A stretch of DNA of 64,000 nt, from NCBI GenBank assembly GCA_950097015.1, contig CATNEN010000037.1, positions 3,410,001-3,474,000 of the forward strand. The letters are read 5' to 3'. The DNA is from Macrostomum hystrix. Lineage: Eukaryota > Animalia > Platyhelminthes. The notes beneath the pieces were generated by a model. That model saw only the letters and a list, made by a program, of their open reading frames with translations. It searched no databases and was not told the DNA's origin. Positions 3,201-41,550 of the stretch are shown piece by piece; the first letter of the stretch is position 1, and the number at the start of each line of letters is the position of its first letter. Position numbers and translations under genes: made by a program.

Positions 3201-6200
3201 CCATCAATGGGATAGATTAGCAATCAATTATATTCCTCCATCAATGGGATAGATTAGCAATCCATTATGTTCGTCCATCAATGGGTTAGATTAGCAATCC
3301 ATTATATTCCTCCATCAATGGGATAGATTAGCAATCCATTATGTTCCTCCATCAATGGGTTAGATTAGCAATCCATTATGTTCCTCCATCAATGGGATAG
3401 ATTAGCAATCTATTATGTTCCTCCATCAATGGGATAGATTGGCAATCCATTATGTTCCTCCATCAATGGGATCGATTAGCAATCCATTATGTTCCTCCAT
3501 CAATGGGATATATTAGCAATCCATTATATTCCTCCATCAATGGGATAGATTAGCAATCCATTATGTTCGTCCATCAATGGGATAGATTAGCAATCCATTA
3601 TATTCCTCCATCAATGGGATAGATTAGCAATCCATTATATTCCTCCATCAATGGGTTAGATAGCAATCCATTATATTCCTCCATCAATGGGATAGATTAG
3701 CAATCCATTATATTCCTCCATCAATGGGATAGATTAGCAATCCATTATATTCCTCCATCAATGGGATAGATTAGCAATCCATTATGTTCCTCCATCAATG
3801 GGATAGATTAGCAATCCATTATATTCCTCCATCAATGGGATAGATTAGCAATCCATTATATTCCTCCATCAATGGGATCGATTAGCAATCCATTATATTC
3901 CTCCATCAATGGGATTAGATTAGCAATCCATTATATTCCTCCATCAATGGGATAGATTAGCAATCCATTATGTTCCTCCATCAATGGGATAGATTAGCAA
4001 TCCATTATATTCCTCCATCAATGGGATAGATTAGCAATCCATTATATTCCTCCATCAATGGGATAGATTAGCAATCCATTATGTTCCTCCATCAATGGGA
4101 TAGATTAGCAATCCATTATATTCCTCCATCAATGGGATAGATTAGCAATCCATTATATTCCTCCATCAATGGGATAGATTAGCAATCCATTATATTCCTC
4201 CATCAATGGGATAGATTAGCTATCCATACTGAGACTGATACTGAGTGCAGCTCTTACAGATAATGAGAAAATCAGGAAGGCTCGTCAACTTGGTTGGTGA
4301 TTAGTTAAAACAGTAGGCTCTATTGCCATCTTTAATGCCATCCAATCGATCCAGATTGCCACAGCCAGTCTGGATCACCAGACCCTGCTGATGACCGTGT
4401 TCCACGTGGACAAGCAAAAGCGACAGAAGGCGGTGGGTCACGTGGCTTTCCCGCTGCGTGAGCTGCTCTCTGTGGACAAGGACTGTCGGATGTTTCGCGA
4501 CCTGGACTCTGAGACTGGAGATGTGAGTCTTCTGTGAGACTTCTTAATTCTTAGAAATTGACCTAGTAGATTCTAGGTGAGATTCGAGTAAATTCTAGTA
4601 GATTCTAGGTGAGATTCTAGTAGATTCTAGGTGAGATTCGAGTAAATTCTAGTAGATTCTAGGTGAGATTCTAGTAGATTCTAGGTGAGATTCTAGTAGG
4701 TTCTAGGTGAGATTCTAGTAGATCTAGGTGAGATTCTAGTAGATTCTAGATCAGATTCTAGTAGGTTCTAGGTGAGATTCTAGCAGATTCTACGTGAGAT
4801 TCTAATAGATTCTAGGTGAGATTCTAGTAGGTTCTAGGTGAGATTCTAGTAGATTTTAGGTGAGATTCGAGTAGATTCTAGTAGATTCTAGGTGAGATTC
4901 TAGTAGATTCTAGGTAAGATTCTAGTAAATTCTAGGTGAGATTCTAGTAGATCTAGGTGAGATTCTAGTAGATTCTAGATCAGATTCTAGTAGGTTCTAG
5001 GTGAGATTCTAGCAGATTCTAGGTGAGATTCTAATAGATTCTAGGTGAGATTCTAGTAGATTCTAGCTAGGTGAGATTCTCGTAGATTCTAGCTGGGTGA
5101 GATTCTAGTAGATCTAGGTGAGACTCTAGTAGATCTAGGTGTGATTCTAGTAGATTCTAATCGAGATTCTAGTTGAGTTATTTATAACAAACAAGAGTCT
5201 TAAGTCACAAGAAACATAAGGATTGTAATGAAAGATTTTCACGTTTCTACAGCTCTCGAAATACAAAGAAGCAGATGCTAATATTCACTAATATTCACAA
5301 GAAAGATAAATAGACATTTTCTTTTGATGTTTTCTGACATCGACAAATATGCTAACAGGATATCCCGTTTAAGCTACGAATTTATCGATTAGGTATTTCA
5401 CAATACCTAACAAATTGTGATATCGACTAGTGTGGTATGTCGAGTGTAGTATCGACTACCGCAGATGATGGCGTCAAAACCCTAACTGACTTTCAGAGCT
5501 CGCAGAACCCGGAGGTGAAGATCGCCCTGACCTATCACGCCCAGCTCGAGCGCATCACGGTCGGCCTTCACGAGTGCAGGAATTTGCCAACTAAAAATGA
5601 AACAGACGAGTGCATTGGTGGGCATGAGAGACTCGTTCGATATACCCGTTCATTGCGCATTGATAAGCGATTAGTGCAAATAGAATAGAACAAATAGAAT
5701 AGAATAGCTTAAACCGGTTAAACTGTTCTCGATAATATTGCTCCGATTATTGTCCACTACCTCTTCTACTCACTCTTGTTCTCATTCTCATTCATATTGT
5801 CCTCTCTCCTCTCTCTATTATCCTCTCTCCTCTCTCTATTATCCTCCATCCTCTCTCTATTATCCTCTCTCCTCTCTCTATTATCCTCTCTCCTCTCTCT
5901 ATTATCCTCTATCCTCTCTCTATTATCCTCTCTCCTCTCTCTATTATCCTCTCTCCTCTCTCTATTGTCCTCTGTCCTGTCTCTATTATCCTCTCTCCTC
6001 TCTCTATTATCCTCTCTCCTCTCTCTATTATCCTCCATCCTCTCTCTATTATCCTCTCTCCTCTCTCTATTATCCTCTCTCCTCTCTCTATTATCCTCCA
6101 TCCTCTCTCTATTATCCTCTCTCCTCTCTCTATTGTCCTCTGTCCTGTCTCTATTATCCTCTCTCCTCTGTCTATTATCCTCTCTCCTCTCTCTATTATC

Positions 6201-9200
6201 CTCTATCCTCTCTCTATTATCCTCTCTCCTCTGTCTATTATCCTCTATCCTCTCTCTATTATCCTCTCTCCTCTCTCTATTATCCTCTCTCCTCTCTCTA
6301 TTATCCTCTCTCCTCTCTCTACTATCCTCTCTCCTCTCTCTATTATCCTCTCTCCTCTCTCTATTATCCTCTCTCCTCTCTCTATTATCCTCTCTCCTCT
6401 CTCTATTATCCTCTCTCCTCTCTCTATTATCCTCTCTCCTCTCTCTATTATCCTCCATCCTCTCTCTATTATCCTCTCTCCTCTCTCTATTATCCTCTCT
6501 CCTCTCTCTATTATCCTCTCTCCTCTCTCTATTATCCTCTCTCCTCTCTCTATTATCCTCTCTCCTCTCTCTATTATCCTCTCTCCTCTCTCTATTATCC
6601 TCCATCCTCTCTCTATTATCCTCTCTCCTCTCTCTATTATCCTCTCTCCTCTCTCTATTGTCCTCTGTCCTGTCTCTATTATCCTCTATCCTCTCTATTC
6701 TATTATCCTCTCTCCTCTCTCTATTATCCTCTCTCCTCTCTCTATTATCCTCTCTCCTCTGTCTATTATCCTCTATCCTCTCTCTATTATCCTCTCTCCT
6801 CTCTCTATTATCCTCTCTCCTCTCTCTATTATCCTCTCTCCTCTCTCTATTATCCTCTCTCCTCTCTCTATTATCCTCTCTCCTCTCTCTATTATCCTCT
6901 CTCCTCTCTCTATTATCCTCTCTCCTCTCTCTATTATCCTCTCTCCTCTCTCTATTATCCTCTCTCCTCTCTCTATTATCCTCCATCCTCTCTCTATTAT
7001 CCTCTCTCCTCTCTCTATTATCCTCTCTCCTCTCTCTATTATCCTCTCTCCTCTCTCTATTATCCTCTCTCCTCTCTCTATTATCCTCCATCCTCTCTCT
7101 ATTATCCTCTCTCCTCTCTCTATTATCCTCTCTCCTCTCTCTATTATCCTCTCTCCTCTGTCTATTATCCTCTATCCTCTCTCTATTATCCTCTCTCCTC
7201 TCTCTATTATCCTCTCTCCTCTCTCTATTATCCTCTCTCCTCTCTCTATTATCCTCTCTCCTCTCTCTATTATCCTCCATCCTCTCTCTATTATCCTCTC
7301 TCCTCTCTCTATTATCCTCTCTCCTCTCTCTATTATCCTCTCTCCTCTCTCTATTATCCTCTCTCCTCTCTCTATTATCCTCTCTCCTCTCTCTATTATC
7401 CTCTCTCCTCTCTCTATTATCCTCCATCCTCTCTCTATTATCCTCTCTCCTCTCTCTATTATCCTCTCTCCTCTCTCTATTGTCCTCTGTCCTGTCTCTA
7501 TTATCCTCTATCCTCTCTATTCTATTATCCTCTCTCCTCTCTCTATTATCCTCTCTCCTCTCTCTATTATCCTCTCTCCTCTGTCTATTATCCTCTATCC
7601 TCCCTCTATTATCCTCTCTCCTCTCTCTATTATCCTCTCTCCTCTCTCTATTATCCTCTCTCCTCTCTCTATTATCCTCTCTCCTCTCTCTATTATCCTC
7701 TCTCCTCTCTCTATTATCCTCTCTCCTCTCTCTATTATCCTCCATCCTCTCTCTATTATCCTCTCTCCTCTCTCTATTATCCTCCATCCTCTCTCTATTA
7801 TCCTCTCTCCTCTCTCTATTATCCTCTCTCCTCTCTCTATTATCCTCTATCCTCTCTCTATTATCCTCTCTCCTCTCTCTATTATCCTCTCTCCTCTCTC
7901 TATTATCCTCTCTCCTCTCTCTATTATCCTCTCTCCTCTCTCTATTATCCTCTCTCCTCTCTCTATTATCCTCTCTCCTCTCTCTATTATCCTCCATCCT
8001 CTCTCTATTATCCTCTCTCCTCTCTCTATTATCCTCTCTCCTCTCTCTATTATCCTCTCTCCTCTCTCTATTATCCTCTCTCCTCTCACGGATAATCGGA
8101 ACACTTTTACCTAGAACAGTTGAATACGAGATTTGCTTGCCACCAAGGTCAGAGCTGATGCAGTAACAACTACATTGAGTTCTTTAGTTTTACATTTTAA
8201 ATAGGCCACGATGATTCCGTGGGAAACCCGCAGAAGTCTACCTGAGGGTGTCCATGCACACCGGACTGCAAGGCAAGGAGGTGAAGAGCAAGCGCACAGA
8301 GACAGTGACTGGCTCCTTGGCCATCAATCAGTCGCTCATTTTCAACCGGGTGACGGACCTGAGCCAGACCATCATCAAAGTGACCATGATGCACCACGCC
8401 ACGGGCATTGGAAGCCTTTTTGGTATGCTCCGACTTTATCCGCCAAATTCTACATCAGATTTTCACCCGCTATACATCATAAATATTAAATACTTACATT
8501 GTGCTAATCATCTATTAGTGGCAAATATTATCTATTTATTTCACTACGCCATCAATCGGATAGATTAACGAGACATTCTGTTCCTCCATCCATGGGATAG
8601 ATTAGCAATCCATTCTATTCCTTCATCCATGGGATAGATTAGCAATCCATTCTATTCCTTCATCCATGGGATAGATTAGCAATCCATTCTATTCCTTCAT
8701 CTAGGGGATAGATTAGCAATCCATTCTATTCCTTCATCCATGGGATAGATTAGCAATCCATTCTATTCCTTCATCCATGGGATAGATTAGCAATCCATTC
8801 TATTCCTTCATCCATGGGATAGATTAGCAATCCATTATATTCCTTCATCCATGGGATAGATTAACGATACATTCTGTTCCTTCATCCATGGGATAGATTA
8901 GCAATCCATTCTATTCCTTCATCCATGGGATAGATTAGCAATCCATTCTATTCCTTCATCCATGGGATAGATTAGCAATCCATTCTATTCCTTCATCTAG
9001 GGGATAGATTAGCAATCCATTCTATTCCTTCATCCATGGGATAGATTAGCAATCCATTCTATTCCTTCATCCATGGGATAGATTAGCAATCCATTCTATT
9101 CCTTCATCCATGGGATAGATTAGCAATCCATTATATTCCTTCATCCATGGGATAGATTAGCAATCCATTCTATTCCTTCATCTAGGGGATAGATTAGCAA

Positions 9201-9927
9201 TCCATTCTATTCCTTCATCCATGGGATAGATTAGCAATCCATTCTATTCCTTCATCCATGGGATAGATTAGCAATCCATTCTATTCCTTCATCCATGGGA
9301 TAGATTAGCAATCCATTCTATTCCTTCATCTAGGGGATAGATTAGCAATCCATTCTATTCCTTCATCCATGGGATAGATTAGCAATCCATTCTATTCCTT
9401 CATCCAGGGGATAGATTAGTAACTTCACCCAGGGACTGAGTATTTAGTAGTGCCTAAGCAATCCACTCTATTATTATGGGATCTGATATTGTCTCTTTCT
9501 TTAGTGGAAATGAAGAACTAAATTTACAGATGAAAAAAATATCTTTTTTTCCAGTGCAGCAGATACAGATAGTCACAGTGTCTTACTCAAAGTAGCAGTA
9601 AAAGCTAATTTGAGCTTAAAGACAGTTTTCGTATTATATAAATTTCAATCGGATGAAAGCAGACAAAAGCGGAAGTAATATTAGAAGCTAGCTTTAATTA
9701 CTTGTTTGCTCAACTCAAAATTGTAACTCGAAGATCAGAAAAGAATCGTAGCACTGTAAAAGTGCAAATCCGCATTTGTACCTGGCATCCTAGACAAGCC
9801 ACTCGGCAGTGTTGTCCTCGGCTGCGAGCTGTTCGCCAAGCGCCGCGAGCTGGAGCACTGGAAGGCGATGTCGGCCAACCCGGAGCAGACCATCACCTAC
9901 TGGCACTCGCTCAGCGCTGCAGTTTGA
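207..9927 (+). CDS. SYT15: Synaptotagmin-15-like tandem C2A/C2B protein, spliced, 5' part (TM region) outside the window
   Basis: Hand-joined exons: 207-461, 1442(or 1452)-1703, 1828-1921, 4355-4522, 5497-5617, 8234-8422, 9794-9927 (TGA). Boundaries are GT-AG and phase-compatible from exon 2 on. Translation gives GQLDPSLY, C2A (RLWFVLNY...CYVRLAL...KKKTNNPNFDEKFCFQ...VFHVDKQKRQKAVGHVAFPL, resembling the SYT15 HVDRQRKHQLLGQVLFPL segment as I recall it) and C2B ending LGSVVLG...HWKAMSANPEQTITYWHSL. The canonical Ca2+-binding Asp set is not evident. AATAAA at ~9967-9976. Confidence 0.85.
475..1440 (+). repeat. 19-bp minisatellite (GTAGACTCAATAGACTCGA), SYT15 intron
   Basis: About 45-50 tandem copies with a CTCGAG core. 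Confidence 0.95.
2008..4225 (+). repeat. 37-bp minisatellite, two variant blocks (GATTAGCAATCCATT...ATGGGATA)
   Basis: Variant TTCTATTCCTTTATGC up to ~2790, then variant TTATATTCCTCCATCA. Confidence 0.95.
4560..5170 (+). repeat. 22-bp minisatellite (TAGATTCTAGGTGAGATTCTAG)
   Basis: Tandem copies in a SYT15 intron; same family at 10690-11730. Confidence 0.95.
5795..8086 (+). repeat. 21-bp polypyrimidine minisatellite (TATTATCCTCTCTCCTCTCTC)
   Basis: About 108 copies; source of the three spurious 740-800 aa ORFs. Confidence 0.97.
8555..9420 (+). repeat. 37-bp minisatellite (GATTAGCAATCCATTCTATTCCTTCATCCATGGGATA)
   Basis: Same family as 2008-4225, third variant. Confidence 0.95.
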
Positions 9928-16833: not shown

Positions 16834-18548
16834 ATGACCACGGTAACTACCTTGGTGCCGGCATGGGTGTCAGCAGATGCCGCCGCTGCTCTGCCATTTG
16901 ACATTCCCACACTGCCTATGGGTGCTCGAGTGCTCATCATTCTGATCCTGTCCGCCTGTGGCCTTGTCTGCCTGCTGGGCAACGCGGTTACCTGTCACGT
17001 GATCTTACACTCGCGCCGGCTGCAGAGTACCACAAATTATTTCGTCATCGGTTTGAGCGGCTCGGCCATGACCTTCACGGTGTGCCTGGCCATGGCTCTA
17101 GTGAGCCTGGTCGGCCTGTCTTGGCCGCTGGGAGACCCGGCCTGCCGTCTGGCCGGGCTGCTGCTGCACAGCCACCTGGGCTGCAATGCTTGCCTGCTGC
17201 TGTCAATCCAGGCTGATCGCTACTATGCCATTGTGTGCCCGTTGAGCTCGAAGATTAGCCGAACGGTTGCTAAGCGACTGATTGGGGGCAGCTGCCTGCT
17301 AGGCCTTGCCCTGGCCGCTCCGATGGCCGCCTTCTATGGCCAGCAGCGTCTGCCGCAGGCCAGTGAAAGCAGCCGATTTGTGTGCGCCCCCTTGGCTTGG
17401 TCAGGCCTGCCGCTGATCTACATTTGTCCGTACCTGGCCCTGGCCTACCTGCTGCCAGCTTGCGCCTCACTGGGACTGTTTGGCCGGGTTTGGACCTACT
17501 TGTGGACTATCAATCAGCAGAGGGGGGCCCTGCGTGGCGGCAGAATGCTGCAGCGGACGGCCAACCAGGTGAGACAGACAGACTGGTCCGAATAAGTCAC
17601 TTTCCATTCACGCTGTTCAACTCCAAGCTAAACTCGCAAGTGCTTACGCTAAATTGCAAATTACAAAATTTAATTGATGCCTTATACTCCGCTTGCTAAG
17701 CGATGCGCAGGTCACCATACTACGCAAACCCCTTCACTCCGCCAACCACACCAATCCGCCAGCCACCTCACTCCGCCAGCGACCTCACTCCGCCAGCCAC
17801 TTCACTCCGCCAGCCACCTCACTCCGCCAGCCACCTCACTCCGCCAGCCACCCCACTCCGCCAACCACTTCAGTCCACCAACCACCTCACTCCGCCAGCC
17901 ACCTCACTCCGCCAGCCACCTCACTCCACCAGCCACTTCACTCCGCCAGCCACTTCACTCCGCCAGCCACCTCACTCCGCCAACCACTTCACTCCGCCAG
18001 CCACCTCACTCCGCCAGCCACTTCACTTCGCTATACACAAAGTTTCCAGAAAAAATAGTAGCATATCTAAAACAAATTTTAACTGCAGGTACCGCGCACT
18101 AAGGTGAAAACCTTCAAGTTAATGGCCACTGTGACACTAACAGACCTGGCAGCAATGTCACTTGCACAAATTCTCGTGCTCGCCTTTGTTGGCCTGCTGG
18201 GAGCGTCGGCTGGCACATCAGCAGGTGCCCACTTCGACAGGCTACGATCCTTTCTTGCTGTCAGCCTGTCTGTACAGCCTAGCCGGCCTATCCAAGCCAA
18301 TTCTTTACGCCTGTATGAACGCTAATTTTCGACGCGGCTGCCGCGAAGTTCTGTGTTGGTCCAAACAGCGGGTGCATCGCCAGGAGTTGTACACGGTAAC
18401 CAACGTCTCCGTGTTCAGCAAGCGGAACTATGTAACGGCTGTGGATATTCGTGGTACAGCGGAGAACCGCTGGGAGAATCCATCAATCTTCGAGATAAGC
18501 TCCTCCGCAAAGCCGTCACCAAGTGGTTATCATGACAACGCAATTTGA
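16834..18548 (+). CDS. GPR19: GPR19-like class A orphan GPCR, two exons, with an apparent 1-nt frameshift in exon 2
   Basis: Exon 1 16834-17568 (strong acceptor ending 16789 upstream of the ATG; donor GTGAGA at 17569); exon 2 18089-18548. Motifs: STTNYFV, DRYYAIVCPLSSKISRTVAKRLI, QRTANQ|VPRTKVKTFKL, SKPILYACMNANFRRG...KRNYV, all matching GPR19-family signatures from memory. TM6 and TM7 lie in different frames. Confidence 0.85.
17730..18029 (+). repeat. 17-bp minisatellite (CCACCTCACTCCGCCAG) in the GPR19 intron
   Basis: Tandem copies; reverse-complement copies at 18828-18955. Confidence 0.9.
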
Positions 18549-18827
18549 AGCGCTCAAACCATGGTTGAGTTGTATTTTCTTGCTTTACAAAATGGCTGAG
18601 CATTTTAAAAACCTCAAGCACCAAAAGACTTATAGCTCGAAGAATTTCTAGACTACGAGTATTTAGAATACGAATAGAAAAATATTTTTTGCACGCGTGC
18701 ACTTTTTTCGCAATAATAATCTATTATCGATAGTTCGACATGTCAGTTTTAGCACACTTGCACGTTGCACGTCCCATTAAAAAAGCTGGGAAAAACTAAC
18801 GTATAAATTGATGTACTGGTTCATTAG

Positions 18828-33082: not shown

Positions 33083-36000
33083 ATGAGCGAGTTCATAGGC
33101 GCCCAGTTGCAGCTAGGACTGTGGCCCACTGTTGGGTACATTTATTGGCACTGTTGTGGAGGTTAGCAATGAAAAGGTGACTATGAGTGAGGCCAGTCGC
33201 AATGGCGTGCCCAGCGATACCAGCTCTGTGACATTGCACAAGTCGTCTATTGTTAGCATTGTTATGCTTCAATCTAAGGAAACTTTAGCTATGGCTAAGA
33301 ATACTAAGAAGCAGCTAGATACTTCCCAGACACAGAAGAAAGTAGCTGCAGCAGCACCAGCGGCAGCGGTGTCAGCGGCTCCAGCTGCAGCTTCAGCTTC
33401 ATCTGCCGCCATCGCCAAGCAGCAGCGAACAGCTGAGAAGCTCAAGAGCATACCGAATGCTACACCGGCCTACATCTGCACTAGTCCGCCAGTGATGGCG
33501 CCTTCCTACTTTGCAGGTAGCAATAAGAAAAAACAACAGCAGCAGGGAGGAATAACTCCAACTAGAAAGACTCCAGTGGCGGAACAGCAGCATCGAAATG
33601 TATGTACGCTGAAATTTTAGTAGTACAGAGATCTTGGCAGCTGCGAAATAAATATGGGCTAGGAGACTGTAGCTCAATCATGTGATTGGGGAGGGGGTGG
33701 GTGGCAGAGCCTCTGCCTCTCGCGCCAAGGTCCCTGAGCTCGATTCCGCGGCAAGGCAACATTAATTTGGGGCGTAGCCGCGGAGAAAAGGCTTGGGGGC
33801 TTGTCGTACAAGTTACGCCCTTGAGGGCCAACCTCTAAAGTACAGTGAGGGTGTGTTCACTGCCTGGCGATGTCAGGGCAGATGTACACACCTGTGTGAG
33901 CGAAATGGGGAGAATTGCCTCCACGCTGGCTTGGGGTCTAGTGTCACCAATTGATTCGACATCGCCCACAGCATTCCAGCAATTCTTATTATGATTATGG
34001 GCTAGGGGACTGTAGCTCAATCATGGACTTGGCGACAGCTGTAGCACAGTATTTCATGTACATTAGCATTCGACTACATTTTGCAGCAACATGCGTCATC
34101 AGATTTCAATGCGGCTAATAACAACAACAGCAATAATGGCAGCGCATTTGTTCCCTACCGTGGAAGCAAACTGCCTCAGCAGCAGCAGCAGCAACAGCAG
34201 CAGCCTAGGCACAACGCGTTTAGCATGTCTGCCGGCGACATGATGGAAGAATTTGATTTTGAAGGCAATCTCGCTCTGTTTGACAAGCGCGCCTTCTACG
34301 AAATGGTAGACAGTGGCCAGACTCCAGAGCCGGATGTGGTTCGTACCGCCCAGCCGCCTCAGCCCGAACCCAAACTGCGGCCAGATCAGAGTGTGCTGCT
34401 GCCTGGCGGTCAGGCGCCGGCGACGCCTTCCATTGAGGTTCGTTAAACCAATATTGTCAGAGTCTCTGTTGGGTTTTATAGGTTAGGTCCTTCAGGACCG
34501 GCTTTAGGTCCTTCAGGACCGGCTTTAGGTCCTTCAGGGCCGGCTTTAGGTCCTTCAGGACCGGCTTTAGGTCCTTCAGGACCGGCTTTAGGTCCTTCAT
34601 GGCCGGCTTTAGGTCCTTCATGGCCGGCTTTAGGTCCTTCAGGACCGGCTTTAGGTCCTTCAGGACCGGCTTTAGGTCCTCCAGGACCGGTTTAGGTCCT
34701 TCATGGCCGGCTTTAGGTCCTTCATGGCCGGCTTTAGGTCCTTCATGGCCGGCTTTAGGTCCTTCAGGACCGGCTTTAGGTCCTTCAGGACCGGCTTTAG
34801 GTCCTTCAGGACCGGCTTTAGGTCCTTCAGGACCGGCTTTAGGTCCTTCAGGACCGGCTTTAGGTCCTTCAGGACCGGCTTTAGGTCCTTCAGGACCGGC
34901 TTTAGGTCCTTCAGGACCGGCTTTAGGTCCTTCAGGATCGGCTTTAGGTCTTTCAGGACCGGCTTTAGGTCTTTCAGGACCGGCTTTAGGTCTTTCAGGA
35001 CCGGCTTTAGGTCCTTCTTTAGGATATGTATCCTATCCTAAATATATAAATTCATTGATTAAACTTGCAGGTACCCTGCAAAGTTGACTGCCAGTTTACC
35101 ACAGACGTTGGCCTGCCTGTGCCCTCCGTAACAGAGGAGCTCCGGGTGGCTGTTTTATCTGCGGCCGACAAAGCCGGACTGACTGCAGCTCGCTTGGCGG
35201 AGGCCTTTGGTCGGAGTGCCGCCGAGTTCTTGGTGAGACTACAGCTGTCTCTTGGCTTAGAACTGGAATTTCTCGCATTAGAACTGGATTCTGTTACTTT
35301 AGAACAGGAATCTCTTACTTTACAACAGGAATCTCTCACATTAGAACAGGAATCTCTTACTTTAGAACAGGAATCTCTTACTTTACAACAGGAATCTCTC
35401 ACATTAGAACAGGAATCTCTCACATTAGAACAGGAATCTCTCACATTTGAACAGGAATCTCTCACATTTGAACAGGAATCTCTTACTTTAGAACAGGAAT
35501 CTCTTACTTTACAACAGGAATCTCTCACATTAGAACAGGAATCTCTTACTTTAGAACAGGAATCTCTTACTTTACAACAGGAATCTCTCACATTAGAACA
35601 GGAATCTCTCACATTAGAACAGGAATCTCTCACATTTGAACAGGAATCTCTCACATTTGAACAGGAATCTCTTACTTTAGAACAGGAATCTCTTACTTTA
35701 CAACAGGAATCTCTCACATTAGAACATGAATCTCTCACATTAGAACAGGAATCTCTCACATTTGAACAGGAATCTCTCACATTAGAACAGGAATCTCTCA
35801 CATTAGAACATGAATCTCTCACATTAGAACAGGAATCTTTCACATTAGAACATGAATATCTCACATTAGAACAGGAATCTTTCACATTAGAACAGGAACA
35901 TCTCACATTAGAACAGGAATCCCTTACCTTAAAATGCGAACCTGCCCCTGTCTTGAAAATGCGGTAAGTCGAGTATTGTATAATCATATTCATAAAAATC

Positions 36001-36578
36001 ACCGATCAACCGGCCGGCAGGTGCAACAGGTGGGCGGTGCCAGTCGTCTTCAACCCGGCAATCAGCACCAACTGCCCCAGGTGGCCGTATTAGTTGGCCC
36101 CGGTAGGCGCGGCCTAATGGGCATAACAATGGCCCGACACCTGGCTAACAAAGAGGTTAGAGTGCACGTTTACTGTAGCGAACGTGAGCTGACTGTCTCA
36201 GCCGAGCTAGACCAAGAGATCCGGCTGTTTCGCTCCACCGGCTGTCCAGTAGTGCACTCTTGTCGCGACCTACCCTGGCTGCTAGACTACATTGTGCTGG
36301 CCACCAGTGAGCCGGACCATCCCGATCACACCCTGGCTCTCTGGTGCCGCTCCAACCGAGCCCCAGTTGTCGGAGTCTGTCCGCAGCAGAGAAATCCTGC
36401 TAGATTAGAGTGCAAAATCAATCTGCAATACTGCCTGCCCGTACCTGTGGATGCCGGCTACGGCGCTACCTACCTGGTTGATGCTGGTATCACCAAGTAT
36501 GTCTTTAGGCAGGTCGGCATTCTCTACTCCAGCCCGTTCGGTCATCGATCGGTTGTGCAACTGCACACCAACAATTAA
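33083..36578 (+). CDS. EDC3: Enhancer of mRNA decapping 3 (LSm, FDF and YjeF-N domains), four exons, apparent 1-nt insertion near 33116
   Basis: Exons 33083-33599, 34087-34437, 35071-35232, 36021-36578, all phase 0 GT-AG. N-terminal LSm MSEFIGAQLQL-DCGPLLGTFIG; FDF motif EEFDFEGNLALFDK; FTTDVGLPVPSV; GGASRLQPGNQHQLPQVAVLVGP...ARHLAN (YjeF-N). Confidence 0.93.
33683..33995 (+). mobile_element. SINE (second family) in EDC3 intron 1, flanked by 30-bp direct repeats
   Basis: TGGCAGAGC...GAGCTCGATTCC tRNA-like head; homologous to 10454-10690 and 55822-55998; direct repeats at 33653-33682 and 33996-34025 with one mismatch. Confidence 0.7.
34485..35020 (+). repeat. 21-bp minisatellite (GGCTTTAGGTCCTTCAGGACC), EDC3 intron 2
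   Basis: About 25 copies. Confidence 0.95.
35270..35925 (+). repeat. 21-bp minisatellite (TTAGAACAGGAATCTCTCACA), EDC3 intron 3
   Basis: About 31 copies. Confidence 0.95.
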
Positions 36579-36679
36579 TCCTTGATCTTCATTGATGGGC
36601 GAATGAGACAATTTGCTTGATAAAACTGATCATCCACTGGCCAATAACATACGAGCGCTTGATCAGACCTGATCATCGA

Positions 36680-37912
36680 CTGGCCAATTAGACAGTAAAA
36701 TTGATAGCAATAATCAGAGACTAGCCAATTAGACAGTTAAATTGATAGAAATGATCAGAGACTGGCCAATTAGACAGTTCAATTGATAGAAATGATCAGA
36801 GACTGGCCAATTAGACAGTTCAATTGATAGAAATGATCAGAGACTGGCCAATTAGACAGTAAAATTGATAGAAATGATCAGAGACTGGCCAATTAGACAG
36901 TTCAATTGATAGAAATGATCAGAGACTGGTCAATTAGACAGTAAAATTGATAGCAATGATCAGAGACTAGCCAATTAGACAGTTAAATTGATAGAAATGA
37001 TCAGAGACTAGCCAATTAGACAGTTCAATTGATAGAAATGATCAGAGACTGGCCAATTAGACAGTTCAATTGATAGAAATGATCAGAGACTGGCCAATTA
37101 GACAGTTCAATCGATAGAAATGATCAGAGACTGGCCAATTAGACAGTTCAATTGATAGAAATGATCAGAGACTGGCCAATTAGACAGTTCAATTGATAGA
37201 AATGATCATCGACTGGCCAATTAGACAGTTCAATTGATAGAAATGATCAGAGACTGGCCAATTAGACAGTTCAATTGATAGAAATGATCAGAGACTGGCC
37301 AATTAGACAGTTAAATTGATAGAAATGATCATCGACTGGCCAATTAGACAGTTCAATTGATAGAAATGATCAGAGACTGGCCAATTAGACAGTTCAATTG
37401 ATAGAAATGATCAGAGACTGGCCAATTAGACAGTTCAATTGATAGAAATGATCAGAGACTGGCCAATTAGACAGTTAAATTGATAGAAATGATCAGAGAC
37501 TGGCCAATTAGACAGTAAAATTGATAGAAATGATCAGAGACTGGCCAATTAGACAGTTAAATTGATAGAAATGATCAGAGACTGGCCAATTAGACAGTTA
37601 AATTGATAGAAATGATCAGAGACTGGTCAATTAGACAGTTAAATTGATAGAAATGATCAGAGACTGGCCAATTAGACAGTTCAATTGATAGAACTGATCA
37701 GAGACTAGCCAATTAGACAGTTAAATTGATAGAAATGATCAGAGACTGGCCAATTAGACAGTTAAATTGATAGAAATGATCAGAGACTAGCCAATTAGAC
37801 AGTTAAATTGATAGAAATGATCAGAGACTAGCCAATTAGACAGTTAAATTGATAGAAATGATCAGAGACTAGCCAATTAGACAGTTAAATTGATAGAAAT
37901 GATCAGAGACTG
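36680..37912 (+). repeat. 41-bp minisatellite (GATCAGAGACTGGCCAATTAGACAGTTCAATTGATAGAAAT)
   Basis: About 30 copies between the EDC3 stop and MED9. Confidence 0.95.
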
Positions 37913-38515
37913 GCCCGTCTAGCAGTTGCGTCTTTATTTGTTCATTTATTTTTTTAGTGAATAGTTACTTTTTATGGCTTTTAATTGCACTTCATAAGGT
38001 ATCTTTATTAATTAATGCGCATTTGGTATTACTTATTGTTTTTCATAAAAAGTAGTATCATCCGCGAATATATTTTTATCTGTATTTATTTCATATCCCT
38101 ATAAATATTGTGTGAGCTTGCAAAGCTGTACATTATCGTTTTGTTGTTCTTTCTAGAGTAGTGTTGTGAGTTGCTTACTTTGATCCGGTGCAGTGTTGTA
38201 TTTTAACAAACGTGTAGTACGAGCTAAATTTAATAAATATTTTTATTGTAAGACTGCTTGATCTGGGTGAGTTTAAAATAAGAAAATAATAAATTACTTC
38301 TTCAATCCCTTCTATAAAAATCTACAAATTAATATTTACGTCGCTTTTTTGCAATAGCCCAGCAAAACTGCAAATTTCGACCGTAAAATTCTTTGCTTTC
38401 TATTGTCCCAAGTAGGCATTTTAACAAACTGGTTTCTAAAAATTATTAAAATCTAAAAAAATATTCCAGATTTAGCAGTATCAATCTTGGTTGACAGATT
38501 GTAAAACAGCAGCAC

Positions 38516-38836
38516 ATGCATCAGCATCAGCAGCAGCAGCAGCAGCGCCAACAGCCGGAGGAATCAGCCACACCCATCGAGCAGGTTGACCTAGTTTTTG
38601 CGCCGCTAATTCGCGACATTTTCATTCACTACGCCAGCGACTCACCGGGCACAACTAGCAAGATTCAGGAGCTGCGGCTCAAACTAGAGACCGCCAGGCA
38701 CCAGATTGAACAGGCTGAAGGCATCGAGCTTGATCCTGAGACCCAGCGTCAACTGCTGGACTGCTTGGCGCACAAGTACAAAGAGAAGAGCGACCTGCTA
38801 GCCCGGCTGCGCCAGTGGCATGAGCCTGGCCAGTGA
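38516..38836 (+). CDS. MED9: Mediator complex subunit 9
   Basis: 106 aa single exon: poly-Q N-terminus, FAPLIRDIF...DSPG, LRLKLETARHQI...GIELDPETQRQLLDCL...KSDLL, matching the Med9 pattern (FLPLV...DSP...GI.LSPEQQ..QL..L...K.ELL). Confidence 0.85.
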   Translation: MHQHQQQQQQRQQPEESATPIEQVDLVFAPLIRDIFIHYASDSPGTTSKIQELRLKLETARHQIEQAEGIELDPETQRQLLDCLAHKYKEKSDLLARLRQWHEPGQ

Positions 38837-39341
38837 ATCTCGCGACTGTTCGACCATTGCGTCGCAGCTCTACCAGCTTCACCGGGTCTCCTGCTCGAAC
38901 GGCCGCGAGTACACCGGCTGGTTGTACACAGTCGATCCGGTCAGCCAGACCAGAGTGCTGGTAGACCTTGAGCACAGTCTGCTTCACTTCCTACCATCTG
39001 GCGGCATTGTTGAAGCTGGCCCGGTGCCCGGAGCTCCGCCTGCCAGCTCCCAGCAGCGGCTTGACATTGACCGGCTAGCCGAGGGCGATGTTCTCGCCGA
39101 CGCTACGTCTAGTCGTCCCGAAGTTGATAGCGATACGGCCGTCCAGCGTCGAGATCGGGTGCGCGCCTGGTTCGCTAAGAATCGCGTCGATCTTGGCATC
39201 GACGGCGAGGATTCATTGACGCTGACCCTTGGCGACAGTCTGGCAATGCGACCGCCCTACTTGGCCCGCACCTGCTTCTGCAACAATGAAATTGTATTAG
39301 CCAGGTGCACGACTCTTCTGGCCTCCATGCCGCTTGATTGA
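38820..39341 (+). CDS. GEMIN6: Gem-associated protein 6 (SMN complex)
   Basis: 173 aa single exon: EYTGWLYTVDPVSQTRVLV (Sm fold), RDRVRAWFAKNRV, RPPYLARTCFCNNEIVLARC, matching Gemin6 (GWVLTTDPVS...W.EKN.I...PPY...C...NEIILSR). AATAAA at 39342-39347 directly after the stop. Confidence 0.9.
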   Translation: MSLASESRDCSTIASQLYQLHRVSCSNGREYTGWLYTVDPVSQTRVLVDLEHSLLHFLPSGGIVEAGPVPGAPPASSQQRLDIDRLAEGDVLADATSSRPEVDSDTAVQRRDRVRAWFAKNRVDLGIDGEDSLTLTLGDSLAMRPPYLARTCFCNNEIVLARCTTLLASMPLD

Positions 39342-39347
39342 AATAAA
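39342..39347 (+). terminator. Polyadenylation signal shared by MED9/GEMIN6
   Basis: AATAAA immediately after the GEMIN6 TGA; none between 38516 and 39341. Confidence 0.7.
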
Positions 39348-39911
39348 TGCCAGCTCAGCATTGCGATTTTCCTATTATAATACTCATAGTAGCTTTAAAA
39401 AGGTCATTCGTTCTTCACTCAATTGTTTATTTTTTAATTGTGCTTGCTATAAAAAGTCGCATTCGTTTATAAATAAATTGTGCACATTCATGTTCCTACG
39501 GCACATGACTTATCGCTCACCAGCCGCTTCAGCTTGTTATTTGGCTGCGTTTCAATAACGCCAGAAAATTAAGACAGTGTCTTAACTATGTTCTTTGCTT
39601 TCCTGCAGAAAAGCACAAATTTGGAAATACGACTAAGGACGCATACGCGTGCCCAGTTGGTCTCGTCAATTAAAACTTATCGGCTTTTCTTGAAGCGTGG
39701 GAACGTCCTTAGGAAGCATTTGGTGCTATTTTTATACTCCAGCCAATCAAACTGGTAACAGTCCAACAGTTGGTTTAAATCTGATTTATATCTACGGATA
39801 TTTAAATAAACGCTTCGACTAACATTTTTAATGATTCACCTTCACCCATTGCATTCATTTGCTGCACAGCAAATAGCTCATTTCAAAATAGCAACATAAT
39901 CAGTCGCTGAT

Positions 39912-41550
39912 TTCCTTGGACTACGCACTCTTCACGATATCCTTGGACTATGCACTCTTCACGATATCCTAGGACTACGCACTCTTCACAATATCCTTGG
40001 ACTATGCACTCTTCACAAAATCCTTGGACTATGCACGCTACACAATATCCTTGGACTACGCACTCTTCACAATATCCTTGGACTATGCACGCTACACAAT
40101 ATCCTTGGACTACGCACTCTTCACAATATCCTTGGACTACGCACTCTTCAAAATATCCTTGGACTACGCACTCTTCACAATATCCTTGGACTACGCACTC
40201 TTCACAATATCCTTGGACTACGCACTCTTCACGATATCCTTGGACTACGCACTCTTCACAATATCCTTGGACTATGCATTCCTAAGTTCTACGCACTCTT
40301 AAGGACTACTCCTCTTCAGGTCTACGCACTCTTCACGATATCCTTTGTCTATGCACTCCACACAATATCCTTGGACTACGCACTCTTCACAATATCCTTG
40401 GACTACGCACTCTTCACAATATCCTTAGACTACGCACTCTTCACAATATCCTTGGACTACGCGCTCTTCACAATATCCTTGGACTACGCACTCTTCACAA
40501 TATCCTTGGACTACGCACTCCACACAATATCCATGGACTACGCACTCTTCACAATATCCATGGACTACGCACTCTTCACAATATCCTTGGACTACGCACT
40601 CTTCACAATATCCTTGGACTACGCACTCTTCACAATATCCTTGGACTACGCACTCTTCACAATATCCTTGGACTACGCACTCTTCACAATATCCTTGGAC
40701 TACGCGCTCTTCACAATATCCTTGGACTACGCACTCTTCACAATATCCTTGGACTACGCACTCTTCACAATATCCTTGGACTACGCACTCTTCACAATAT
40801 CCTTGGACTACGCACTCTTCACAATATCCTTGGACTACGCGCTCTTCACAATATCCTTGGACTACGCACTCTTCACAATATCCTTGGACTACGCACTCTT
40901 CACAATATCCTTGGACTACGCACTCTGCACAATATCCTTGGACTACGCACTCTTCACAATATCCTTGGACTACGCACTCTTCACAATATCCTTGGACTAC
41001 GCACTCTTCACAATATCCTTGGACTACGCACTCTTCACAATATCCTTGGACTATGCATTCTTAAATTCTACGCACTCTTAAGGACTACTCCTCTTCAGGT
41101 CTACGCACTCTTCACGATATCCTTTGTCTATGCACTCCACACAATATCCTTGGACTACGCACTCTTCTCAATATCCTTGGACTACGCACTCTACACAATA
41201 TCCTTGGACTACGCACTCTTCACAATATCCTTGGACTACGCACTCTTCACAATATCCTTGGACTACGCACTCTACACAATATCCTTGGACTACGCACTCT
41301 TCACAATATCCTTGGACTACGCACTCTTCACAATATCCTTGGACTACGCGCTCTTCACAATATCCTTGGACTACGCACTCTTCACAATATCCTTGGACTA
41401 CGCGCTCTTCACAATATCCTTGGACTATGCATTCTTAAGTTCTACGCACTCTTAAGGTCTACTCCTCTTCAGGTCTACGCACTCTTCAGGTCTACGCACT
41501 ATTCACAATATCCTTGCTGCACGCACTCTTCACAATATCCATTGACTAAG
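39912..41550 (+). repeat. 27-bp minisatellite (ATATCCTTGGACTACGCACTCTTCACA) with recurring spacer block
   Basis: Tandem copies; the same divergent block at 40272, 41051 and 41425. Confidence 0.95.

Follow-up and report, generated by a model that had tools for sequence, protein, structure and literature searches.

Overlapping MED9 and GEMIN6 reading frames on one spliced-leader-capped mRNA in Macrostomum, with predicted translation of GEMIN6 by leaky scanning

The MED9-GEMIN6 locus

The DNA analysed here (the window: 64,000 nucleotides of Macrostomum hystrix, assembly GCA_950097015.1, contig CATNEN010000037.1, positions 3,410,001 to 3,474,000 of the forward strand) contains two protein-coding reading frames that share strand and sequence, the first encoding a MED9 and the second a GEMIN6 (Table 1). 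An earlier note on this DNA, made from the letters alone, had set out the coordinates of the two ORFs, their common strand, their +1 frame relation and their 17-nt overlap, and the sequence agrees throughout. It likewise bears out the start contexts given there: the MED9 start reads cacATGc, with C at both -3 and +4, and the GEMIN6 start reads ggcATGa, with G at -3. The MED9 context is called weak here on the ground that metazoan starts generally have a purine at -3, a rule that may differ from Macrostomum's own preference. The MED9 stop is the UGA at 38834-38836, so that the GEMIN6 AUG at 38820 lies 14 nt upstream of it.

The same note had placed an AATAAA after the GEMIN6 stop, where indeed the first such signal stands, and a motif scan of the interval from one ORF's stop to the other's found neither AATAAA nor ATTAAA, in the window or in Macrostomum lignano. 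A second AATAAA follows at 39472. The G+C content is about 55-64% in the coding region, against about 30% in the flanks.

Table 1. Coordinates of the features of the MED9-GEMIN6 locus in the window
Feature	Positions	Strand	Remarks
SL trans-splice acceptor TTCCAG	38464-38469	+	from the X6 contig 5' end and motif scan
5' UTR of the mature mRNA	38470-38515	+	46 nt; without an ATG of its own
MED9 ORF (ORF1)	38516-38836	+	106 aa; internal Met absent
GEMIN6 ORF (ORF2)	38820-39341	+	173 aa; +1 frame relative to MED9
Overlap of MED9 3' end and GEMIN6 5' end	38820-38836	+	17 nt, cagtggcATGagcctggccagTGA / ATGAGCCTGGCCAGTGA
First AATAAA poly(A) signal	39342-39347	+	adjoins the GEMIN6 stop
3' UTR	39348-39568	+	short form to about 39390-39397; X5 contig to 39568

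Identity of the two proteins

Both proteins are recognized by Pfam with scores above the gathering cut-offs. The MED9 ORF matches Med9 (PF07544) at E 6.5e-9 (36.2 bits, the cut-off being 26.9), and a profile built on MED9 of both Macrostomum species finds human MED9 in a Mediator structure (PDB 7emf_I; E 4e-7, over residues 6-100). The GEMIN6 ORF matches Gemin6 (PF06372, E 2.3e-5) and Gemin6_C (PF20417, E 2.3e-8); the two domains expected of a GEMIN6, Sm-like at the N-terminus and Gemin6_C at the C-terminus, are both present. With GEMIN6 of both Macrostomum species as query, an exhaustive HMM search returned 193 Gemin6 homologues at E <= 0.001. A word-based homologue search with MED9 as query gave zero matches, and exact-protein look-ups in public assemblies with MED9 and GEMIN6 of both species, including the 196-aa GEMIN6 of M. 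lignano, gave none either.

Conservation in Macrostomum lignano

The closest match to GEMIN6, at 63% identity, is a protein of M. lignano, and the locus that encodes it (L001, NIVC01003533.1) is organized in the same way, with a MED9 ORF at 4694-5017 and GEMIN6 at 5001-5591. The overlap there (L001, 5001-5017) is identical in length, 17 nt, and in frame relation, the 304 nt separating the MED9 and GEMIN6 starts hold 0 ATG, and the start contexts are those of the window, MED9 having C at -3 and +4 and GEMIN6 having G at -3. The earlier note had pointed to related flatworms as the place to look for conserved adjacency and ATG depletion, and M. lignano keeps the adjacency, the 17-nt overlap, the ATG-free MED9 and both start contexts. 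MED9 is absent from the NCBI annotation of the M. lignano locus.

Between the two species the MED9 proteins are 80% identical, with a dS of 1.3 and a dN/dS of 0.084, while for GEMIN6 the corresponding values are 1.5 and 0.19. Purifying selection acts on both ORFs. With dS at 1.3-1.5 and dN/dS low, both ORFs must be coding, and the overlapping architecture has outlasted the saturation of synonymous sites. Selection of this kind would show only that both frames are translated somehow, the mechanism being left aside. Conservation of the 17-nt overlap itself is accounted for by protein constraint at both of the termini that it encodes (WHEP.. for MED9 and MSL.SES for GEMIN6).

The transcript and its spliced leader

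The RNA evidence consists of assembled contigs of public runs rather than of single molecules, and assembly of this kind loses rare variants and short tips. Two small runs, both of one study (X5 and X6), match the locus at an identity of at least 99%. The X5 contig has 1102 nt, covers 38471-39568 and reads past the second AATAAA. The X6 contig has 944 nt over 38469-39390 and, in addition, a loose 5' end of 22 nt, GCGAAGACTCAATTTATTGCAT. Together with the G at 38469, these letters form the 3' part of the M. lignano spliced leader (SL), which is 35 nt long and reads CGGTCTCTTACTGCGAAGACTCAATTTATTGCATG (PMC8629364). Since X6 carries SL letters, the contigs are derived from RNA and their strand is defined. 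The SL junction is TTCCAG/ATTTAG at 38469/38470 (here and below a slash within letters marks the splice point), 46 nt 5' of the MED9 AUG. TTCCAG is the sole match in 38300-38900 to [T/C]TNCAG, the acceptor motif of M. lignano, carried by 9551 of 21754 acceptor sites in that species, and it is the acceptor in use. At the other end of the transcript, X6 stops at 39390 and a contig of a further run, X1, stops at 39397. X1 and another run, X3, are labelled as other organisms, and their fragments of about 200 nt, which lie inside or just 3' of GEMIN6, add nothing more.

Across 38469-39390 the X5 and X6 contigs, which would drop minor forms, show no joints, indels or internal loose ends. That the two ORFs lie on one mRNA had been proposed in the earlier note, and the contigs do extend without a break from the SL joined at 38470 past the poly(A) signal; the base count at the junction of the ORFs, for which that note had wanted confirmation from reads, comes out without an indel in the RNA contigs of two runs. 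Its suggestion of SL trans-splicing is upheld as to the cap and not as to the place: the mRNA is SL-capped, at a junction upstream of MED9 and not inside it. The contigs support a single mature, intronless, SL trans-spliced mRNA shared by MED9 and GEMIN6. Moreover, with the two ORFs overlapping and without a poly(A) signal from one stop to the other, an mRNA that encodes MED9 must include GEMIN6 as well. We consider it very likely that the mRNA is structurally dicistronic and that this structure is conserved.

The pair in other flatworms

In three trematodes, Calicophoron daubneyi, Opisthorchis felineus and Dicrocoelium dendriticum, GEMIN6 is preceded by a co-oriented MED9-like gene. In C. daubneyi the annotated protein (CAL8102575.1, 298 aa) has a 131-aa N-terminal exon that is spliced in frame, over an intron of 6.5 kb, to the exons of GEMIN6; left unspliced, that first exon is an ORF of 138 aa followed by AATAAA. 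Among the 10 longest Gemin6 homologues this spliced gene model is the sole one with a Med9-like N-terminus (E 0.01). O. felineus and D. dendriticum have an orthologous gene of 134-138 aa immediately 5' of GEMIN6 and in the same orientation, at a distance of 4.7 kb in O. felineus and, measured to the main coding exon, of about 12 kb in D. dendriticum. The trematode GEMIN6 ATG lies right at a splice acceptor, ttttttag/ATG in C. daubneyi and ttccag/ATG in D. dendriticum.

Three weak, concordant leads bear on the nature of the upstream trematode protein. Its top Pfam match is Med9, at E 0.0095 (about 0.01) and over profile positions 18-78 of 80; hhalign pairs it with the two Macrostomum MED9 sequences at E 0.0017, with a conserved LDxExQ helix aligned; and the top three named Atlas clusters returned by a protein-language-model search are all Med9. 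On these grounds the protein is probably MED9. When the profile of the trematode MED9-like proteins was searched against PDB, nothing matched.

MED9 was not upstream in any of four non-flatworm Gemin6 loci or transcripts, and in Echinostoma caproni there is no MED9 within 4.8 kb upstream of GEMIN6, which is all the sequence there. In human, MED9 and GEMIN6 lie on different chromosomes. Judged from these sequences, which are a limited sample, the MED9-to-GEMIN6 pair appears to be common to Macrostomorpha and Trematoda without being general. A survey of operons in parasitic flatworms (PMC12582326) leaves the pair unlisted, its supplements being without gemin or Med9.

ATG depletion between the two starts

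The stretch between the two starts had been described in the earlier note as free of ATG, and the count is 0, in all frames, over the 301 nt from 38519 to 38819. The accompanying claim, that several ATGs would be expected by chance, depends on the null model, and the depletion carries less weight than that note gave it. Dinucleotide shuffles of the stretch from the MED9 start to the GEMIN6 start give 3.2 expected ATGs, with P(0) = 0.014, and the rate in the window's remaining coding sequences (43 ATG in 3411 nt, about 1 per 80 nt) gives a Poisson P of about 0.02. When codons are respected the expectation weakens: permuting the codons of MED9 gives P(0) = 0.27, and resampling synonymous codons with the MED9 protein held fixed gives a probability of 0.66 that there is no out-of-frame ATG.

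The depletion is therefore statistically modest, with P about 0.01-0.04, and is essentially that of a MED9 protein without internal Met; the aligned region of human MED9 contains 3 Met, where Macrostomum has none. Given the protein, the absence of out-of-frame ATGs is unremarkable, so the depletion rests on the missing internal Met codon, and it is kept in M. lignano largely because the MED9 proteins of the two species are so similar. The codon-aware resampling speaks against taking the depletion as strong evidence; it fits leaky scanning and, taken alone, is modest evidence.

How GEMIN6 may be translated

We infer that the dicistronic mRNA is also the template for GEMIN6, which would most likely be translated from it by leaky scanning. 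The locus would give one mature mRNA, with the SL joined at 38470 and poly(A) added after the AATAAA at 39342. A fraction of the 40S subunits scanning this mRNA would bypass the MED9 AUG on account of its weak context, with C at -3 and +4, would then scan 301 nt in which every frame is free of AUG, and would initiate at the GEMIN6 AUG, with its G at -3. As to ancestry, an old co-oriented MED9-to-GEMIN6 pair of flatworms may have had its spacer collapsed into an overlap in Macrostomum. For the whole statement, that is one SL-capped MED9-GEMIN6 mRNA with GEMIN6 predicted to be translated by leaky scanning, we would put the probability at roughly 0.5. Leaky scanning, although unproven, is the best-supported candidate mechanism for GEMIN6 translation, since the first AUG is weak, no AUG lies between, the second has a purine at -3, all of these features are conserved in M. 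lignano, and no processing signal separates the two ORFs.

The SL has an AUG of its own, at its end, which precedes both ORFs and complicates the simple leaky-scanning picture. On the mature mRNA it reads AUG-AUU-UAG, a uORF of two codons whose end lies 41 nt ahead of the MED9 AUG. One could speculate that this SL mini-uORF diverts reinitiating ribosomes past MED9 to GEMIN6. Ribosomes that start at the SL AUG would stop at once and scan onward; the nearby MED9 AUG would often be reached before the initiator tRNA had been reacquired, and the next AUG to be met, in an mRNA otherwise free of ATG, would be that of GEMIN6. The larger proposal, according to which the SL would be part of a translation switch, with eIF2-dependent, GCN4-like delayed reinitiation setting the MED9:GEMIN6 ratio in a unit kept since the macrostomid/trematode ancestor, we regard as improbable.

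Of the explanations that do without leaky scanning, the one that survives best is alternative processing, in which an additional, monocistronic GEMIN6 mRNA, made from an SL acceptor AG within MED9 or from an internal transcription start, would be translated conventionally. This is the default solution in flatworms, the position of the trematode GEMIN6 ATG against its acceptor would fit an ancestrally trans-spliced GEMIN6, and rare variants do escape assembled contigs. However, a motif scan of MED9 upstream of the GEMIN6 ATG found no [T/C]TNCAG in either species, a motif that fewer than half of the M. lignano acceptor sites carry (9551 of 21754). The TAG at 38799-38801, which would set the SL AUG in the GEMIN6 frame, is TGG in M. 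lignano, and the only conserved AG, in CAG/TGGCATG, is forced by Gln-Trp codons and as an acceptor would leave the SL AUG 4 nt upstream of the GEMIN6 AUG and out of frame with it. Neither of the two runs has a contig break or a loose end at the MED9/GEMIN6 junction. Internal trans-splicing would, moreover, destroy the MED9 mRNA. Taking both sides together, we think alternative processing unlikely, at something like one chance in four.

Calicivirus, influenza B and the M2 gene of RSV express overlapping cistrons by termination-reinitiation, and the same could be imagined here, with ribosomes that end MED9 at the UGA backing up 14-17 nt and restarting at the GEMIN6 AUG. The closeness of stop and start, 14 nt apart, would suit such a mechanism, as would the exact retention of the 17-nt overlap in two species whose synonymous sites are saturated, but that retention is already accounted for by protein constraint on the termini. 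UGGGA, the TURBS motif 1, is absent from the 130 nt or less upstream of the restart AUG in the window and in L001, the RNA structure at the junction is unremarkable (z = -0.01), and no Rfam element or hairpin was found in the junction region. Reinitiation after an ORF of 106 codons is, in addition, normally inefficient in eukaryotes, and termination-reinitiation gives no role to the ATG-free ORF1 or to the weak MED9 start. We find it quite improbable.

A MED9-GEMIN6 fusion protein, arising through a 1-nt assembly error or through a programmed +1 frameshift in the overlap, recalls the C. daubneyi model in which a MED9-like exon is joined in frame to the GEMIN6 exons, but we give it hardly any credence, since the RNA contigs of two runs have 0 inserted or deleted letters over 38469-39390, the frame offset is identical in M. 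lignano, an in-frame stop stands 21 nt ahead of the GEMIN6 ATG in the window, there is no evident slippery sequence, and 0 of the 10 longest Gemin6 homologues have Pfam Med9 at E < 0.01; the indel-free contigs and the M. lignano offset dispose in particular of the assembly error hiding an in-frame fusion that the earlier note had raised.

Significance

Clustered genes of flatworms are assumed to be expressed by the cutting of polycistronic precursors into monocistronic SL-capped mRNAs. MED9-GEMIN6 is not resolvable by such cutting, and it thus offers a concrete, conserved, mature dicistronic mRNA in an animal that practises SL trans-splicing; in the literature we found no description of a MED9/GEMIN6 dicistron. 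The locus would couple a Mediator subunit, in dosage, to a subunit of the SMN complex, the complex that assembles Sm cores on snRNAs. Transgenesis exists for M. lignano, which makes the mechanism directly testable by reporters. Overlapping architectures of this kind may cause systematic errors of annotation, as with the MED9 missed in M. lignano and the chimeric gene in C. daubneyi, and the linkage of the two genes in both Macrostomorpha and Trematoda could prove useful as a rare genomic character.

Comparison with known systems

The nearest comparison within flatworms is with the SL-resolved operons described for M. lignano (PMC8629364) and for parasitic flatworms (PMC12582326). As in these, same-strand neighbours are co-transcribed, the SL is found at the 5' end of the unit, and the gene pair is conserved across species; operons of the parasitic species are also often mis-annotated as chimeric gene models (PMC12582326). 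Unlike them, MED9-GEMIN6 has no poly(A) signal after MED9 and no acceptor motif before GEMIN6, and its intercistronic distance is -17, as against a typical value of about 100 bp. With 17 nt of the ORFs in common, one pre-mRNA cannot yield two complete mRNAs. An SL-resolved operon with MED9 polyadenylated ahead of a GEMIN6 acceptor was accordingly considered and ruled out, by the overlap and by the lack of AATAAA or ATTAAA between the ORFs in both species.

With the viral cistrons that are translated by termination-reinitiation (calicivirus TURBS, influenza B M2/BM2, RSV M2-1/M2-2) the locus shares a short overlap of stop and start in different frames. It differs from them in being a cellular mRNA and in having no TURBS-like motif, while an ATG-free ORF1 is not a viral feature.

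Dicistronic mRNAs that use leaky scanning are already known in algae, flies and mammals. Mammalian MOCS2A/MOCS2B is an animal dicistronic gene with overlapping or adjacent ORFs. The dicistronic genes of Drosophila (PMC4528330) resemble MED9-GEMIN6 in that one transcript serves two conserved proteins, and in the pair Snurportin/DNTTIP1 (PMC3771954) a factor of snRNP biogenesis is likewise coupled to an unrelated partner; the ORFs of that pair, unlike those of MED9 and GEMIN6, do not overlap, and it has two transcription starts (PMC3771954).

The bicistronic mRNAs of green algae (PMC7896298, PMC11892635) differ from the flatworm mRNA in that the latter is SL-capped and bears the SL AUG, that its ORFs overlap by 17 nt, and that leaky scanning in MED9-GEMIN6 is a prediction from sequence features. 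They resemble it in consisting of one mature mRNA for two unrelated conserved proteins, with a short ORF1, a weak Kozak-like context at the ORF1 start and depletion of AUG before the start of ORF2. In the algae this same leaky-scanning signature drives the translation of ORF2, as was shown by mutating the context of ORF1 (PMC11892635).

Sequence immediately upstream of MED9

The 500 nt directly 5' of the MED9 ATG (window 38016-38515), which are AT-rich and non-repetitive, contain no ATG on the + strand, where 8.5 would be expected from dinucleotide shuffles, and zero was reached in 0 of 3000 such shuffles. Most of this stretch lies in the outron, upstream of the spliced-leader (SL) acceptor. 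The feature is not conserved in M. lignano, whose locus (L001, NIVC01003533.1) carries ATGs at 4537, 4609 and 4653. The absence of ATGs may be due to chance, or it may reflect a translated form of the mRNA that is not trans-spliced.

Low-depth RNA contigs from both runs cover window 37950-38188, at a depth of 5-12 compared with about 30 for the MED9-GEMIN6 mRNA, and stop near 38181-38188; RNA contig coverage is absent in both runs across 38189-38468. These contigs, which carry three clustered mismatches (38134, 38142 and 38151), may derive from the upstream gene, as part of its 3' UTR, or may be remnants of the outron or come from a paralogous copy.

MED9 and GEMIN6 in other flatworms

The N-terminus of MED9 is a CAG/CAT (Gln/His) repeat (window 38507-38546, left out of the reads comparison as a repeat) that is not alike in M. 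hystrix and M. lignano. The NCBI annotation of M. lignano has no gene model for the MED9 ORF at L001 4694-5017, and its Gemin6 (P0001) is 192 aa long as against 196 aa for the genomic ORF, with four residues missing.

The trematode MED9-like ORFs hold zero or one internal Met, and those of Calicophoron daubneyi and Dicrocoelium dendriticum, in which out-of-frame ATGs were counted, have only one in 417 nt. In trematodes a splice acceptor immediately precedes the GEMIN6 ATG, and the C. daubneyi gene model joins a donor within the MED9 C-terminus, in frame, to the acceptor at that ATG. This modelled splice may be genuine, reflecting a fusion or dicistronic transcript, or may be an annotation chimera.

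Coordinates of neighbouring genes, tandem arrays and trematode loci
Feature	Location	Strand	Remarks
EDC3-like gene	window 33132-36578	+	LSm-like N-terminus, FDF motif, YjeF_N-type C-terminus
Tandem array	window 34483-35017		21 nt x 25 copies
Tandem array	window 35257-35921		21 nt x 32 copies
Tandem array	window 36670-37915		41 nt x 30 copies
Tandem array	window 39913-41436		27 nt x about 56 copies; strong C-over-G skew
MED9-like ORF; GEMIN6 ATG	L002 (C. daubneyi) 4001-4417; 10976
MED9-like ORF; GEMIN6 ATG	L003 (Opisthorchis felineus) ~18180-18596; 23268
MED9-like ORF; GEMIN6 ATG	L009 (D. dendriticum) 8980-9396; ~21310

A possible larger operon

The EDC3-like gene is the same-strand upstream neighbour of MED9 and GEMIN6 in the window, and a YjeF_N gene also lies upstream in M. 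lignano (L001 1-383). A single SL operon may comprise EDC3 and, as its downstream unit, the MED9-GEMIN6 dicistron. The genes are flanked or interrupted by large tandem arrays of 41-, 27- and 21-nt units, and the EDC3-MED9 spacer is mostly taken up by the 41-nt array, in agreement with the published report that intergenic distances in M. lignano operons are inflated by repeats.
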